A DNA stretch of 64,000 nt from Felis catus (GCF_018350175.1 NC_058369.1:7750001-7814000); one strand, 5' to 3'; numbered from the stretch's first letter, positions 3,601 to 47,700 are shown. The notes: a model not told the origin generated them from the letters alone. Made by a program: numbers and translations.

Positions 3601-6600
3601 ACGTCTCTCTCTTTGGCTCTCTCTCTCTCTCAAAATAAATAAGCAAATAAACTTAAAAAAAAAAAATCATTAGCAGAAGGCTGGCCTTTTGGGAAGCCAG
3701 CGAGCAGTTGGCCATGGACCTCGTCCAGGCCACATGTGTGGGCAGTGGCTGGGTACAGGAAGGGAGAGCAGACAAATACTTGGAAGAGGGAACTAACCAG
3801 GACTGAAGGTTGGGGTTCAGGGAGAGGCAGGGGCAAGACAGACCTCCTCCCCCAGTCTGGCCTTCAGGGCAAGGAGCTGTGCTCAGAGATAGGAACTCCT
3901 TTTGGGGGCTGAGGTTTGAGGTTTGCACCCAGCTCTGCAAATTCGTGTTTGCAGCAGGTGCTTATGGGTAAGCACTGGACGTCTAAAGGTTTTCTTGCCC
4001 CCCCCCCGTTTGTTTTTAAAGCTATACTGAGATAACATCTACCGAATACATACATAAGTCACCCCTTTCAAGTGTACAATTCAACAAATTTGCATGTATT
4101 TATAGAGTAGCACAGCCCTCACCACCATCTAATTTTAGAACATTTCCATCACCCTAAAAGGAAACCTCATGTCCATTTACAGTCATTCTATTTCTTAAAT
4201 GCATTAATGAAAGCCCTACCTCCAATAACCCATTTTACAGCTCAGGAAACTGAGATTCGATTTCCCCAACTGCGAGGGCTGGAGCAATTTCCAGGGCAAA
4301 GTCGCTCGCCTACAGCTCATAGCACAGAAGCCCCAAAGCTAGGAATCAAACCCAGGGCCCTCAGTGCTAAGTCGCAGCTCACTGGGACTCTGCTTTTAAT
4401 TTTCACTTTCAGTCCTGGCCTGAAATTCTGTTACTTTATGTGTAACGGGGACCCTGGCCTGCAAAACCCAAACCCACATGTTGTGTTTTCAGGGGATACT
4501 TAGAGTTCCGTTTTGAGTGTCTGTTGGTTATTCTTGCATTTTTAACATTTCAGGGGACCACGCAGCACATTTGGGAACTTCTTTCCCCTAAAAGGGGGCT
4601 CCTGAAAGGCCTTAAGTCAGTGCGGGTGGCTCAAACTTATTTTTTCTATAAATACAGAGAGCCTACTGTGTGCCACCAACGGATCAGGGAACAAAGCTGA
4701 CAAAGACCCCCCCCCCCCCCCCCCGCCTCTCCTGGGCTGAAGTTACCTGGCAGGACGGGGAAATAGAGAAACGAGTTAACTGAGAAGATGTGTGTCACCC
4801 TTGGGTGTCGGACAGTGAGGTGTGCTATGGGGGGAAATAAGGCCAAGAAGAAGAGAAGGGGGTAGCATAGGGTCTCTTAAAAACAATCTCTACTCAATCT
4901 CTCCTGGACTGGGCAGTTTAAATTTACTGTATGTATTTGACGGGACTCCCGGTGATAGATTTTGAGGTTTTTGGTTTTTTGTTTTTTTTTTTCCACCCTT
5001 CACTCTTAGACGCTGCAGTGGATAAATTGTTTTTGCCCCCTTCTCAGCCACCTGGGGACTTCCCACCGGTTTATCCTGAAGCTCTTAACATTCCTGTCTG
5101 GCTTAGGTGGTTTGGGGTGTGTCGCGTGAAGAGCGGGGAGGGGGGGAGGCCCCTGGACGGGACGCAGCCGGCGCCCCAGCGCCCCCTGCGGGCGGGCAGC
5201 CTCTCTGGCTCACACAACACCCCCCCACCCCCAGGGTTCCCGGAGCGCGTGGAGTTGGCCCCCCTGCCCCGCTGGCAGCCCGTGGGCGAAAACCTCACCC
5301 TGCGCTGCCAGGTGGCCGGCGGGGCGCCCCGGACCAACCTCACGGTGGTGCTGCTCCGCGGGGAGGAGGAGCTGAGCCGGCAGCCGGCCGTCGGGGAGCC
5401 CGCCGAGGCCACGGTCACGGTGCTGGCGGGCAGAGACGACCACCTCGCCAATTTCTCGTGCCGCACGGAACTGGACTTGCGGTCCCGAGGGCTGGGTCTG
5501 TTCCAGAACAGCTCGGCCCCCAGGCAGCTCCGAACTTTCGGTGAGGCGCTGGAGAGCTGCCAGAGAGGATAGGCTGGGGCGGGGGGGGGGGGGGGGGGGG
5601 GGGGGGGGGAGGGTCCTGCTTGGCGCGTGGGGAAGAAAGGGGCCTTTGGTCATGGGGGTGCTAAGGTGGTGACCTACCTAGATTACAAGGGCTCCTGGGA
5701 AAGAGCATGTTCTTGGCCATTGGGGTGGGGTGCGCTGGGATGGGGCGCCCCAGCTGCAGGATCTTCTGAGAAGGCGGTAACCCCATGTGTAACCCCATAT
5801 GTGTGCCGGGGCAGGGGTGACCCCGGGCCACGGAGGCTCTTGGGAAGAGGATGCCCCAGATGAGGGAATGAAGATGCCCCCAGAAAAGGGCTTTAGGTTG
5901 TCTGTCCCCTCTGTGTTCACACCCACCCTCTCTCACCAGTCCTGCCAGCAACGCACCCAAACCTTGTTACCCCCAGCGTTGTGGAAGCGGGCACAGAGTG
6001 GCCCGTGAACTGCACCATGGACGGGCTGTTCCCAGCTTCGGAGGCCCAAGTCCGCCTGGAGCTGTCTGGCCGGAATCTGCACCCCACAGTCACGCACAAC
6101 AACGACTCCCTCTTGGCCACGGCCCATGACAAGGCCAACATGGAAGAGGAGGGCACCCGGCAGCTGTCGTGCGTGGTGACCCTGGGACACCAGAGCCGGT
6201 CGTGGCAGGAGAATGTGACCATCTACAGTAAGTAGAGACGGGGCGGGGCTTCCAAGGGGTGGGACCGGTACTGGGAGGCGGTGCTCACCGTGTGCCCCGC
6301 CCCCAGGCTTCCCGGCTCCCAACCTGACCCTGAGTGAGCCAGAGGTCTCAGAACAGACTGTGGTGACCGTGGAGTGTGAAGCCCAGGCCGGGGCCCTGGT
6401 GATGCTGAGCGGGGGGGTCCCGGCAAGGCTTCCAGGACCCAGGGCCCAGCTCCAACTAAATGCCAGCGCCGAGGACAATGGGCGCATCTTCTTCTGCTCT
6501 GCTCTCCTGGAGGTGGCCGGGCAGGTGCTACGCAAGAACCAGACCCGGGAGCTCCGTGTCCTGTGTGAGTGGAGCTGCTGGACAATGACTCCTAATCCTC

Positions 6601-44768: not shown

Positions 44769-47700
44769 TCAGGACGGCCCCTCCCCCACAGCCTCCTCGG
44801 GCTGCCTAGACGTCAGGGGCAACCAAGTGCTCCCCTGGTTCACTTGGTAAATGTCACTCCTCTTCTGCAACCCGAAGACGTACACTAAGGCCGCAGTGGT
44901 AGTCACCAACCCCAGGATCACTAACACCACCATGACGATGGTGACAGCATGGGCATTCCGACCTATGCAGAGAAGCAAGGAGTATAAACACACGCACTCT
45001 CCCCGCGTGGGTTGCCCATCTGCATCCGCAACCCCGTTTTGGCTCACCCTGAACGTTCATCACCACGGTCACAGTGTGTGTGCCTCGAGAGCTGACCGCC
45101 CGGCAGGAGTAGGTACCACTATAGTTTAACATGACGGTAAATGGAATCCCGACGGGCACCTCATTCTGGGAGCCTTCCTGAAAACAGTGCAACTGGGGGT
45201 CCGGATTGCCCCGGGCCTGGCACCGCAGGACATTGGTGGTTCTGTCTTTCCACGTCAAGCGCTGGGGACATTTGGCTTGGTCAATCTTGGGACCGTCTAT
45301 GAAACGGTCAAATGATTAGACAGACTGGAGTCACAGCGTGGCAAGGAAGAGTAATGTCTTCCCACCAAACAAGGGGAGCAAGGGTTTAAAGGTCAGAGTG
45401 ACCTACTCACACAGAACACGCAACTGGACGCTCCTGTTCCTGTGTAAGATCTCCCTGTCCACCTCGAGCGTGGCATTGCAGGAGAAGTTGCGCCTGTCAT
45501 CCCTCTCGGTGGCGATTAGCTGAAGCTGGGCAGGCTGGCCAGGGGCCGCAGCCGGAACTCCGTCCAGCGTGACCTGGACTCGGGCCCCGGCCGCGCAAGT
45601 CACAGTCACTTTGGTCCCCTCAGAGGCGCTGGACTCACTCAGGTTTAGGATGGGCCCCCAGAAGCCTAAAAGCAGGGCCTTGCCCTGGAGTTTACTGACC
45701 ACCCACCTCACATCGGATCCCCGCCCTCCATAACACCTGTTTCGTCTCGAGGTATCAGGCCATGCCTTTCTGCTACTCTGCGGGTCCCCACCGCCTACCC
45801 CCCCCCCGCCCCCTTCCAACTTGGGACACTTGGGCTATACCCTTAGTTACTTAGACCCCGCCCACACTACAACCCCTCCCACTCTGGAGGCTCAGGCCCC
45901 ACCTCTCCAGTCTAGTCTTCGTCATCTGTGCGGCGCCACTCGGCTACCGAGGCCGCGCCCCTTGTCCCGCCTGTCGAGCCGTCTTGGCTCCGCCCCCTCT
46001 TACGGTAGATGGTCAAGTTCTCTCGGGCCTCCCGGCTGTCGCTCCCCAATGTCAGGTTGCAGACAATCTCCCGAGCGCCCTCCTGCTCCGCGCTCGCTGT
46101 GACTGTAGCTGTGGCCGTGATCGTATCCCCATGGCTCTCGACAGCAGGATTCAGCATCTGGTTCCCCAGCGCCAGTTGGACCTGGGCCTCGGAGGCCGGG
46201 AACAGCCGGTCCAAGGTGCAGTTCACGGACCATGTCGTTCCCACCTCCAAGAGCCGGGGGACAACGAGGTGTGGGGGGGTCACGGGCAGGGCTGCGGAGA
46301 AGGGCAGGCGTGAGCCGGAGGAGGGCTCCCAGAACCGTGAAAGGGTCTCCCCTTACCCCATGACTCGTTCAGTGCCCCCAACCACGGTCCTTTCCCAGAA
46401 TATCTTGCGGCCTGGATCACCCCCTACCCAGAATACACCCGCAGAGCCTTCTCGTAGGCTACCGCGGCCGCGAGTCTCCCAACGGAAGCTGTGCACGGCC
46501 CAGTAAGCCAAGGGCATGCCTTCCCAGAAGCCGTTGAGGTCCAGTCCACTCCGTTTTCCAAACCCTCCCGGCCAGGGCGCTTCTACTCTGGCTTAGCTCA
46601 TAACCCACCGTCCGCAGTCCCTTCCCTCACCGAAAGTTCGGAGCTGCCTGGGGGCCGAGCTGTTCTGGAACAGACCCAGCCCTCGGGACCGCAAGTCCAG
46701 TTCCGTGCGGCACGAGAAATTGGCGAGGTGGTCGTCTCTGCCCGCCAGCACCGTGACCGTGGCCTCGGCGGGCTCCCCGACGGCCGGCTGCCGGCTCAGC
46801 TCCTCCTCCCCGCGGAGCAGCACCACCGTGAGGTTGGTCCGGGGCGCCCCGCCGGCCACCTGGCAGCGCAGGGTAAGGTTTTCGCCCACGGGCTGCCAGC
46901 GGGGCAGGGGGGCCATCTCCACGCGCTCCGGGAACCCTGGGGTAGGGTTGGGGGTGGGGGAGAATTGCACTTAGCAGCCAGCCCTGCAACTCCCACCCCA
47001 GAGAGCAGAGAGGGGGCTGAGGGTGCCCCAGTGCAGAATTGAAATTTTGAATAAACCTGGAGAGCTTACTTAGTATGTGCCTGCAGAAGTGTTTGCTATT
47101 GTCATTTAGCATCATGATTATTATTTCCTGTTTCGTGGGACACCTTGCCAGGCACTGAAATAAAGTCAGATTTTCTGTTCTGGAGAAATTCACAGTTAAG
47201 GGAAGAAAAAAAAAAAAAAAGAAGAAGGAAGGAAGGGGACCAACTTATGACCACATACAACATTATTAGTACTCATAAAAGTTCCTGTTTATTTAGAGTT
47301 TTCGTTAGACTTTCCAATTTAAAAAAAATTTAAGTTTATTTATTTTGACAGAGAACAGAGCATATGAGCGGGGGAGGGGCAGAGAGAGAGAGAGAGAGAG
47401 AGAGAGAGAGAGAGAACCCTCAAGCAGGCTTTGCGTGCAGTCAGCACAGAGCGTGCTGTGGGGCTTGAACTCACAGACTGTGAGATCATGACCTGAGCCA
47501 AAGTCAAGAGCCAACACTTTACTGACTGAGCCGCCCAGCCGCCCCTCCTATTCCAAATGTCATCCACCTTCATTCACAGGCAACCAAGTGAAATCTTCTC
47601 TATTATTCTTCTCCTTTACAGATGGAGAAACTGAGGCCCAGAGAGGCGAAGGTGAGATGACCTATCCAAGGACACATAGCCAGAAAGGGGCCCGGCTGGG

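Follow-up and report, generated by a model that had tools for sequence, protein, structure and literature searches.

Near-identical Ig domain 2 exons in cat ICAM1 and ICAM3: evidence for recurrent gene conversion among placental mammals

The ICAM1/ICAM3 locus of the cat

The window analyzed here is a stretch of 64,000 nucleotides (nt) of Felis catus DNA (GCF_018350175.1 NC_058369.1:7750001-7814000; G000:C2:7750001-7814000 of a 2.43-Gb assembly in 71 contigs), and all positions are counted from its first letter. Among other genes, it carries exons 2-7 of ICAM1 on the plus strand, ICAM4, ICAM5, RAVER1, ICAM3 on the minus strand and the 3' end of TYK2. ICAM1 and ICAM3 lie tail to tail in inverted orientation, 41 kb apart and with five genes between them. 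Their paralogy is textbook knowledge; ICAM1 can be induced on endothelium and on a wide range of other cells, and ICAM3 is constitutively present on leukocytes. This paper concerns exon 3 of both genes, which encodes the second immunoglobulin (Ig) domain (D2) and which is almost the same in the two, probably as a result of repeated gene conversion.

Near-identity of the two D2 exons

In a direct comparison, 304 of the 306 nt of the D2 exon (99.3 %) are identical in ICAM1 and ICAM3. The first difference, at exon position 21 (T at 5255, A at 46916 on the minus strand), gives TTG (Leu) in ICAM1 and ATG (Met) in ICAM3; the second, at exon position 62 (C at 5296, T at 46875), is the synonymous CTC vs CTT. 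The 6 nt past each exon edge match as well, after which matching drops to noise, and blastn aligns the pair at 97.9 % over 332 nt, decaying edges included. In the remaining Ig exons, nucleotide identity between the genes is 48-65 %. Synonymous divergence (dS) between the cat genes is 0.012 in D2 vs 0.79-2.5 in D1, D3, D4, and D5. Each D2 copy has 33 CpGs, a GC content of 72.5 % and a CpG observed/expected ratio of 0.82, and both differences lie off CpG sites. If D2 diverged as the other Ig exons do, at most 2 differences in 306 nt would be expected with a probability of 1e-70; with the rate of D3, the most similar of them, the figure is 1e-54, and chance is excluded as the source of the D2 identity.

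A first-pass annotation of this DNA had reported the same 304/306 match with its Leu/Met and synonymous CTC/CTT changes, and recomputation gave the same result. It had also described identity reaching only a few bases into the introns, clearly diverged D1, D3, D4, and D5 exons, and about 33 CpGs of which none differ. These statements agree with the figures above, and the D1 peptides that it quoted are present.

The 2.43-Gb cat genome holds only these two copies of D2. The D2 exon of ICAM5 is 68 % identical to those of ICAM1 and ICAM3 at the nucleotide level, with a GC content at third codon positions (GC3) of 0.73; at the protein level, ICAM5 shares 68-69 % with ICAM1/ICAM3 in D2 and 32-66 % in the other domains. 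ICAM5 was considered as a third exchange partner and rejected on its D2 dS of 1.2-1.4 and on its placement in a clade of its own.

The features of the locus are collected in Table 1. All Ig exons of ICAM1 and ICAM3 have AG/GT borders and phase 1, and the ICAM3 D1-D5 sequence spliced from the window is identical to Felis catus XP_044901331. Feline samples are among the sequencing runs in which the window's sequence is found. The D2 peptide matches residues 86-185 of human ICAM-1 structures (1mq8, 1iam, 1ic1) with E values of 1e-46 to 1e-49; the best human ICAM-1 structure match of the ICAM1 D2 exon has an E value of 2.6e-49, and the ICAM-5 D2 match one of 1e-38. The Pfam family PF21146 (ICAM1_3_5_D2) is annotated on full-length felid ICAM proteins in precomputed form. 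A direct Pfam scan of the 101-amino-acid (aa) D2 exon alone gave zero matches in the local Pfam copy, so the identity of the domain was taken from the structure matches.

Table 1 Features of the ICAM1/ICAM3 locus in the window
Feature	Position	Strand	Remarks
ICAM1 D1 exon	621-878	+	Unconverted; 48 % nt and 40 % aa identity to ICAM3 D1; dS ~2.5; Pfam ICAM_N
ICAM1 exon 3 (D2), copy A of the putative converted segment	5235-5540	+	AG/GT borders, phase 1, 101 codons
Identity tract, ICAM1 side	5229-5546	+	Exon plus 6 nt of each intron; ungapped register comparison
Long G run, ICAM1 intron 3	5579-5611	+	38 nt downstream of D2
ICAM1 D3, D4, D5 exons	5940-6227, 6307-6564, 6747-6995	+	Unconverted; 52-65 % nt identity to ICAM3; dS 0.79-1.6
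ICAM1 transmembrane/cytoplasmic exon	7082-7254	+	Unconverted; stop 7252-7254
ICAM5 D2 exon	12970-13290	+	Third paralogue, outside the exchange
Assembly gap or masked stretch	43891-44030	.	140 N; outside both D2 copies
ICAM3 last coding exon	44962-44769	-	Stop 44771-44769
ICAM3 D3, D4, D5 exons	46291-46004, 45665-45411, 45296-45048	-	
ICAM3 exon 3 (D2), copy B of the putative converted segment	46936-46631	-	304/306 vs copy A
Identity tract, ICAM3 side	46942-46625	-	Exon plus 6 nt of each intron
ICAM3 D1 exon	51471-51205	-	Pfam ICAM_N
ICAM3 exon 1	52121-52040	-	ATG at 52121

Isoform X3 of Felis catus ICAM1 (P0361), in which 621-878 is joined to 5940-6227, is a predicted in-frame skip of D2. Predicted D2-skipping isoforms were also seen for ICAM3 (P0188, P0205, P0197), and they occur in several carnivores for both genes. 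As the D2 exon is phase 1/1, its skipping preserves the reading frame.

A carnivore repeat resembling a short interspersed element (SINE; ~190 nt, 70-85 % identity) is present in dozens of copies, at 1190-1930, at 3480-3670 and many times within 20400-59500. Several copies have (GA)n or (CA)n tails, and some lie in intron 2 of ICAM1 and intron 2 of ICAM3. In the window, no SINE-like copy was found at the borders of the identity tract.

Recency and recurrence within carnivores

The two genes were compared at the DNA level in cat, fishing cat, seal, and hippo, all of them Laurasiatheria; the seal ICAM3 locus was taken from a second seal assembly encoding the same protein. In fishing cat, the D2 pair is identical at 305 of 306 nt with the same tract borders, the lone difference lying at exon position 86. 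When cat and fishing cat are considered together, both genes show only four variable D2 sites (21, 62, 86, and 147). Cat ICAM3 has the derived state at positions 21 and 62, where cat ICAM1 and both genes of fishing cat have T and C, and fishing cat ICAM1 has it at position 86. Position 147 (C/G) is a fixed difference between cat and fishing cat that is common to both paralogues. The seal pair matches at 309 of 312 nt, and both seal genes carry a 6-nt insertion relative to those of felids.

Felid protein models give the same picture. L47R is present in ICAM1 as well as ICAM3 of tiger, and Q49E in the two genes of Prionailurus. Private changes in felid D2 are rare (Met7 in cat ICAM3, Ile21 in cheetah ICAM1, and Gly8 in clouded leopard ICAM3), codon 7 being Leu in all other felids examined. 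Per carnivore lineage, 6-13 nonconsensus D2 states are found in both paralogues vs 1-6 differences between the paralogues. In the D2 nucleotide matrix, cat and seal share 90 % identity regardless of the gene, and paralogues within a genome are 99 % identical. In the 200 nt on either side of D2, orthologues are 62-99 % identical and paralogues 33-59 %, which is noise. The lineage-specific changes in both paralogues show that conversion has been recurrent and recent.

A relative date can be suggested for the last event in the cat lineage. Orthologous introns of cat and fishing cat diverge by 1.4-2.8 % (~2 %) and the cat D2 paralogues by 0.65 %, so that the last homogenization in the cat lineage is younger than the cat/fishing-cat split. 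It may have taken place at roughly one third of the time since that split, an estimate from two sites and with a wide error.

It is very improbable, against this background, that a single old conversion, placed for instance in the ancestor of carnivores or of felids, was followed by slow divergence and by no ongoing exchange. Felid D2 copies differ at 0-3 positions and felids share almost the same D2 protein, and one event before the radiation combined with strong constraint could look similar at the protein level. This account is contradicted by the tiger-, Prionailurus-, and seal-specific changes present in both paralogues, by the D2 pair of each carnivore family forming its own well-supported clade, and by the 0.65 % distance of the cat paralogues vs ~2 % in the cat/fishing-cat introns. 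The C/G change at position 147 is not a CpG transition, which speaks against parallel mutation at a hypermutable site.

In hippo, the D2 pair (L007:7403-7711 vs L008:4601-4909) is 84.5 % identical, the 5' half of the exon reaching 76 % and the 3' half 92.5 %. It resembles a partial and older tract of conversion that ends within the exon, and the contrast between the halves suggests that tracts need not coincide with the exon. D2 dS was 0.012 in cat, 0.012 in fishing cat, 0.024 in seal, and 0.25 in hippo, and the other domains had values of 0.55-2.5.

Survey and trees across placental mammals

Relatives were collected by a profile-free search with the D2 peptide, which returned ICAM proteins of full length, followed by two word-indexed searches that yielded named ICAM1, ICAM3, and ICAM5 proteins of many mammals. 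ICAM1 and ICAM3 were then compared domain by domain in cat and 36 other placental taxa (n = 37). Protein identity between the two was 64-100 % in D2 and 31-63 % in D1, D3, D4, and D5 in every taxon, and D2 identity reached at least 90 % in 19 of the 37 taxa. High values were found in all carnivores (94-99 %), horse (98 %), rhinoceros (93 %), and cattle (91 %), in aardvark (92 %), tenrec (95 %), elephant shrew (93 %), tamandua (100 %), and tree shrew (100 %), and in beaver (99 %), squirrel (92 %), and pocket mouse (96 %). The low end was formed by primates (72-79 %), bats (71-81 %), and hippo and camelids (75 %). An exceptional similarity of the human D2 domains (~77 %) was reportedly noted when ICAM3 was cloned. 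Homogenization of D2 is general in placental mammals rather than peculiar to the cat.

ICAM3 is annotated in squirrels, marmot, beaver, jerboa, pocket mouse, kangaroo rat, pocket gopher, and gundi (models P0194, P0201, P0258, P0221, P0230, P0234, P0238, and P0009). The often-repeated statement that rodents lack ICAM3 seems to be true of only some members of the order, such as the mouse-like rodents.

In the D2 tree, ICAM1 pairs with ICAM3 of the same species. Nine such pairs (horse, tenrec, elephant shrew, squirrel, hyena, canid, panda, grey seal, and otter) had support of at least 95 in the Shimodaira-Hasegawa-like approximate likelihood ratio test (SH-aLRT), and the tamandua pair and the tree-shrew pair each consist of identical D2 sequences. 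The D2 tree required 31 gene-label changes, which is no better than with shuffled labels (mean 34.5), and the D1, D3, D4, and D5 trees required 2-3 (minimum 2), that is, they cluster by gene. Approximately unbiased (AU) tests gave a log-likelihood difference of 624 (p = 8e-43) when ICAM1 D2 was forced to be monophyletic and of 631 (p = 2e-9) when ICAM3 D2 was. In shrews and in lemurs, the ICAM1 and ICAM3 D2 clades are sisters within the group, which would place a conversion event in the ancestors of each.

ICAM5 D2 formed its own well-supported clade except for one model from the vole family. This model (P0319, Lemmus lemmus 'ICAM5', 899 aa) groups with ICAM1 in D1 and D2 and is probably a chimeric ICAM1-ICAM5 model.

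Extreme purifying selection on D2 in both genes, or convergence, without any exchange would at least agree with D2 being the most conserved ICAM domain even where conversion seems to be inactive (68-69 % to ICAM5, 72-79 % in primates), but it is extremely unlikely: selection alone predicts D2 trees by gene with short branches and saturated paralogue dS and the opposite was found, with synonymous sites homogenized in cat, fishing cat, and seal (dS 0.012-0.024), a difference of 10 % between cat and seal D2 orthologues vs at most 1 % between paralogues within a genome, a 6-nt insertion and lineage-specific replacements common to both genes, and by-gene clustering of D2 rejected by the AU test.

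Authenticity of the cat structure

An assembly or polishing artefact, in which one exon was copied over the other or both were collapsed, has to be weighed since the two D2 copies are short and nearly identical, a gap in the assembly lies 2.6 kb from the ICAM3 exon, the G run of ICAM1 is handled badly by short reads, and two public contigs discussed below probably mis-join through the D2 repeat. Three Logan contig sets and one raw-read run were therefore aligned to the ICAM3 locus (45900-47300). A single contig of run X1 (2016, organism A) covers 45900-47192, that is, the ICAM3 exon with both introns, with 0 differences. The same interval is covered with 0 differences by a contig of X9, which is possibly the source sample. 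Two contigs of run X2 (organism B) break at 46625 and share a k-1 overlap of 30 nt at 46625-46654; a branch of the graph exactly at the tract border is expected if the same sequence continues into two contexts. Raw reads of X46 (11 reads, about 1 in 100 sampled) agree with the ICAM3 locus and are too few for a statement on exon depth.

An open reading frame (ORF) running from the ICAM3-specific Met into the downstream intron of ICAM3 is matched exactly in two further public contigs. In two other public contigs, the upstream intron of ICAM1 is joined to a D2 with the Leu of ICAM1. The D2 protein of cat ICAM1 is identical in ICAM1 of 11 other felid species, from separate assemblies, and in ICAM3 of 10.

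The gap is found at the 5' end of RAVER1, 739 nt 3' of the ICAM3 stop codon. An independent fishing-cat assembly has the two flanks of the gap in the same order and orientation; there, the match ends at 9154 and resumes at 9296 of locus L003, leaving 141 nt. The gap affects only the exact value of the 41-kb spacing and neither of the D2 copies. The fishing-cat RAVER1 model begins inside the 141-nt interval that corresponds to the cat gap.

The near-identity is not an assembly artefact. In addition to the X1 and organism B contigs, in which the ICAM3 exon stands with its own introns and without differences, and to the ICAM3-specific ORF in other contigs, the same structure is found in fishing cat and seals, in other assemblies and with different diagnostic sites. 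Some 20 felid gene models, drawn from over 10 assemblies, are in agreement on D2, the pattern recurs in 19 of 37 placental taxa, and the gap is outside both copies with flanks that are colinear in another felid assembly. The chance that an artefact accounts for the data is accordingly minimal.

Two public short-read contigs (Logan/ENA; P0411 and P0413) consist of the upstream intron of ICAM1, D2 with Leu, and the downstream intron of ICAM3, joining 5100-5540 to 46630-46596 in window coordinates. It is far more likely that they are de Bruijn mis-joins through a 250-bp perfect repeat than anything else, because de Bruijn assemblers cannot resolve such a repeat and the downstream branch of ICAM1 is hard to sequence. 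There is a slight chance that the inverted D2 exons also serve as crossover substrates and that a 41-kb inversion which swaps the 3' parts of the genes is segregating in cats. If so, the promoter, D1, and D2 of ICAM1 would be fused in frame to the ICAM3 sequence from D3 to the cytoplasmic tail, with the reciprocal product alongside. A fixed tail swap was not found in the 37 taxa surveyed, as D1 and D3-D5 always carry the same gene label.

Proposed mechanism and points that weigh against it

The reading that best fits these data is recurrent and ongoing interlocus (nonallelic) gene conversion confined to a homology island of ~318 bp, to which a probability of roughly 0.93 is assigned. A break or gap in one D2 exon would be repaired by synthesis-dependent strand annealing with the D2 of the other gene as template and without crossover. 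The heteroduplex would stop at the exon edge, leaving tract ends a few bases from the splice sites, because the flanking introns of the two genes are unalignable (33-59 %). D2 is the slowest-evolving ICAM domain and would hence have stayed similar enough for the process to start; it is the most conserved even relative to ICAM5 (68-69 % aa), which would explain why homology survived there. The process would also be self-reinforcing, with each conversion renewing ~318 bp of near-perfect homology and thereby enabling the next. These steps are inferred.

No donor gene can be named, since in low-conversion lineages neither the D2 of ICAM1 nor that of ICAM3 was consistently the closer one to cat D2. 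The long G run in ICAM1 intron 3 was considered as a conserved, break-prone driver of conversion. It is ~30 nt in cat, 10 in fishing cat, 5 in seal, and 5 in hippo, and the candidate was rejected because the run is long only in cat.

Several points count against recurrent conversion or limit the data on which it is based. The reads and contigs were aligned to the ICAM3 locus, and the 3' junction of cat ICAM1, from D2 to intron 3, is given as it stands in the assembly. Two exact ORFs spanning cat ICAM1 D2 and its flanks were not found in the protein collection, and of the words of the ICAM1 locus no more than 0.94-0.95 are present in the Illumina-derived runs, a shortfall that is probably caused by the ~30-nt G run near D2. 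In several surveyed pairs, ICAM1 and ICAM3 come from different species of the same genus or family, a pairing that can only lower the D2 identity figure, and all of the survey relies on automatically annotated models. Assembly collapse could account for one or two of the pairs with 100 % (Tupaia, Tamandua). The evidence for the conversion events comes from a comparison of present-day sequences. Finally, polarized changes showed no excess of weak-to-strong (W->S) over strong-to-weak (S->W) substitutions, the counts being 3 vs 2 in felids and 1 vs 8 in seal.

The last point bears on a possible GC bias. GC3 of cat D2 is 0.92, and GC3 falls with paralogue divergence from 0.91 in felids to 0.88 in seal and 0.81 in hippo. 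ICAM5 exons, which are without conversion, have a similar CpG observed/expected ratio. A GC bias of D2 conversion is not demonstrated.

The first-pass annotation had already proposed recent or recurrent conversion, and this is borne out by the changes that tiger (L47R), Prionailurus (Q49E and position 147), and seal (6-nt insertion) carry in both genes. Its prediction that D2 would cluster by species and D1 and D3 by gene also held, with D4 and D5 likewise grouping by gene. Synonymous divergence in D2 (0.012 vs 0.8-2.5 elsewhere) is not equal to that in D3, and the artefact that it had raised as an alternative fails on the independent contigs and on the other felid and seal assemblies that show the structure. 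Only the suggestion that conversion is possibly GC-biased is not demonstrated, the high GC3 of 0.92 being accompanied by no W->S excess. The observation is thus confirmed and its interpretation supported, and the phenomenon is much more general than was first supposed.

Prior knowledge and comparable systems

In an early study, ICAM-3 is described as the closest homologue of ICAM-1, to which it is 52 % identical across the five domains (J Exp Med 1993, PMC2190956). That ICAM3 is a duplicate of ICAM1 has been attributed to Sugino 2005, as cited in PMC11843237; this recent ICAM3 review mentions only the duplication and the loss in rodents. In the full text of about 8.4 million papers, no report was found that ICAM1 and ICAM3 undergo gene conversion or concerted evolution, although a passing remark in subscription or older papers is possible, and no report of near-identity of D2 within nonprimate genomes was found in searchable full texts. 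We found no published report of the ICAM1/ICAM3 D2 case, which is apparently new as an instance of a known process.

Domain-restricted concerted evolution is known from the N-terminal domains of paired Siglecs in primates (Siglec-5/Siglec-14 and Siglec-11/Siglec-16). There, too, neighboring Ig-superfamily genes that differ in expression or signaling have one extracellular domain kept near-identical by lineage-specific conversion, and the rest of each gene follows orthology. In the Siglecs, homogenization affects the domain that binds the ligand, and the favored reading is that matched ligand specificity has been selected for. In ICAM1/ICAM3, by contrast, the ligand-binding D1 is excluded and the supporting D2, a single exon of 306-312 nt, is the part that appears to be converted. 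The ICAM pair also differs from the Siglecs in that its genes are inverted relative to each other and separated by 41 kb and five other genes.

Exon-limited interlocus conversion is also known from the gamma-globins, the red and green opsins, RHD/RHCE, and CYP21A2/CYP21A1P. These pairs share with ICAM1/ICAM3 tracts of a few hundred bp, homogenized synonymous sites, mosaic phylogenies, and borders at which homology is lost. They are young and tandem, and they can be aligned through introns and flanks, whereas ICAM1 and ICAM3 are old (dS 0.8-2.5 outside D2) and alignable only in the D2 exon, an isolated island of homology.

Significance

For practical work, D2 should be excluded from ICAM1/ICAM3 orthology calls, from gene trees, and from scans of the ratio of nonsynonymous to synonymous divergence (dN/dS). 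In carnivores, horses, cattle, many rodents, and others, short reads inside D2 are unassignable to either gene, which makes variant calls unreliable, and short-read assemblers, as probably in the two contigs described above, mis-join the two loci. Antibodies or ligands that recognize D2 should cross-react between ICAM1 and ICAM3 in species with homogenized D2 exons, and less so in primates.

An exon that appears to have been rehomogenized independently in many placental lineages may serve as a natural system for the study of minimal homology, tract limits, and self-perpetuation in gene conversion. For the ICAM family itself, recurrent conversion would mean that receptors with different expression share one co-evolving structural domain while their ligand- and pathogen-binding D1 domains diverge freely.

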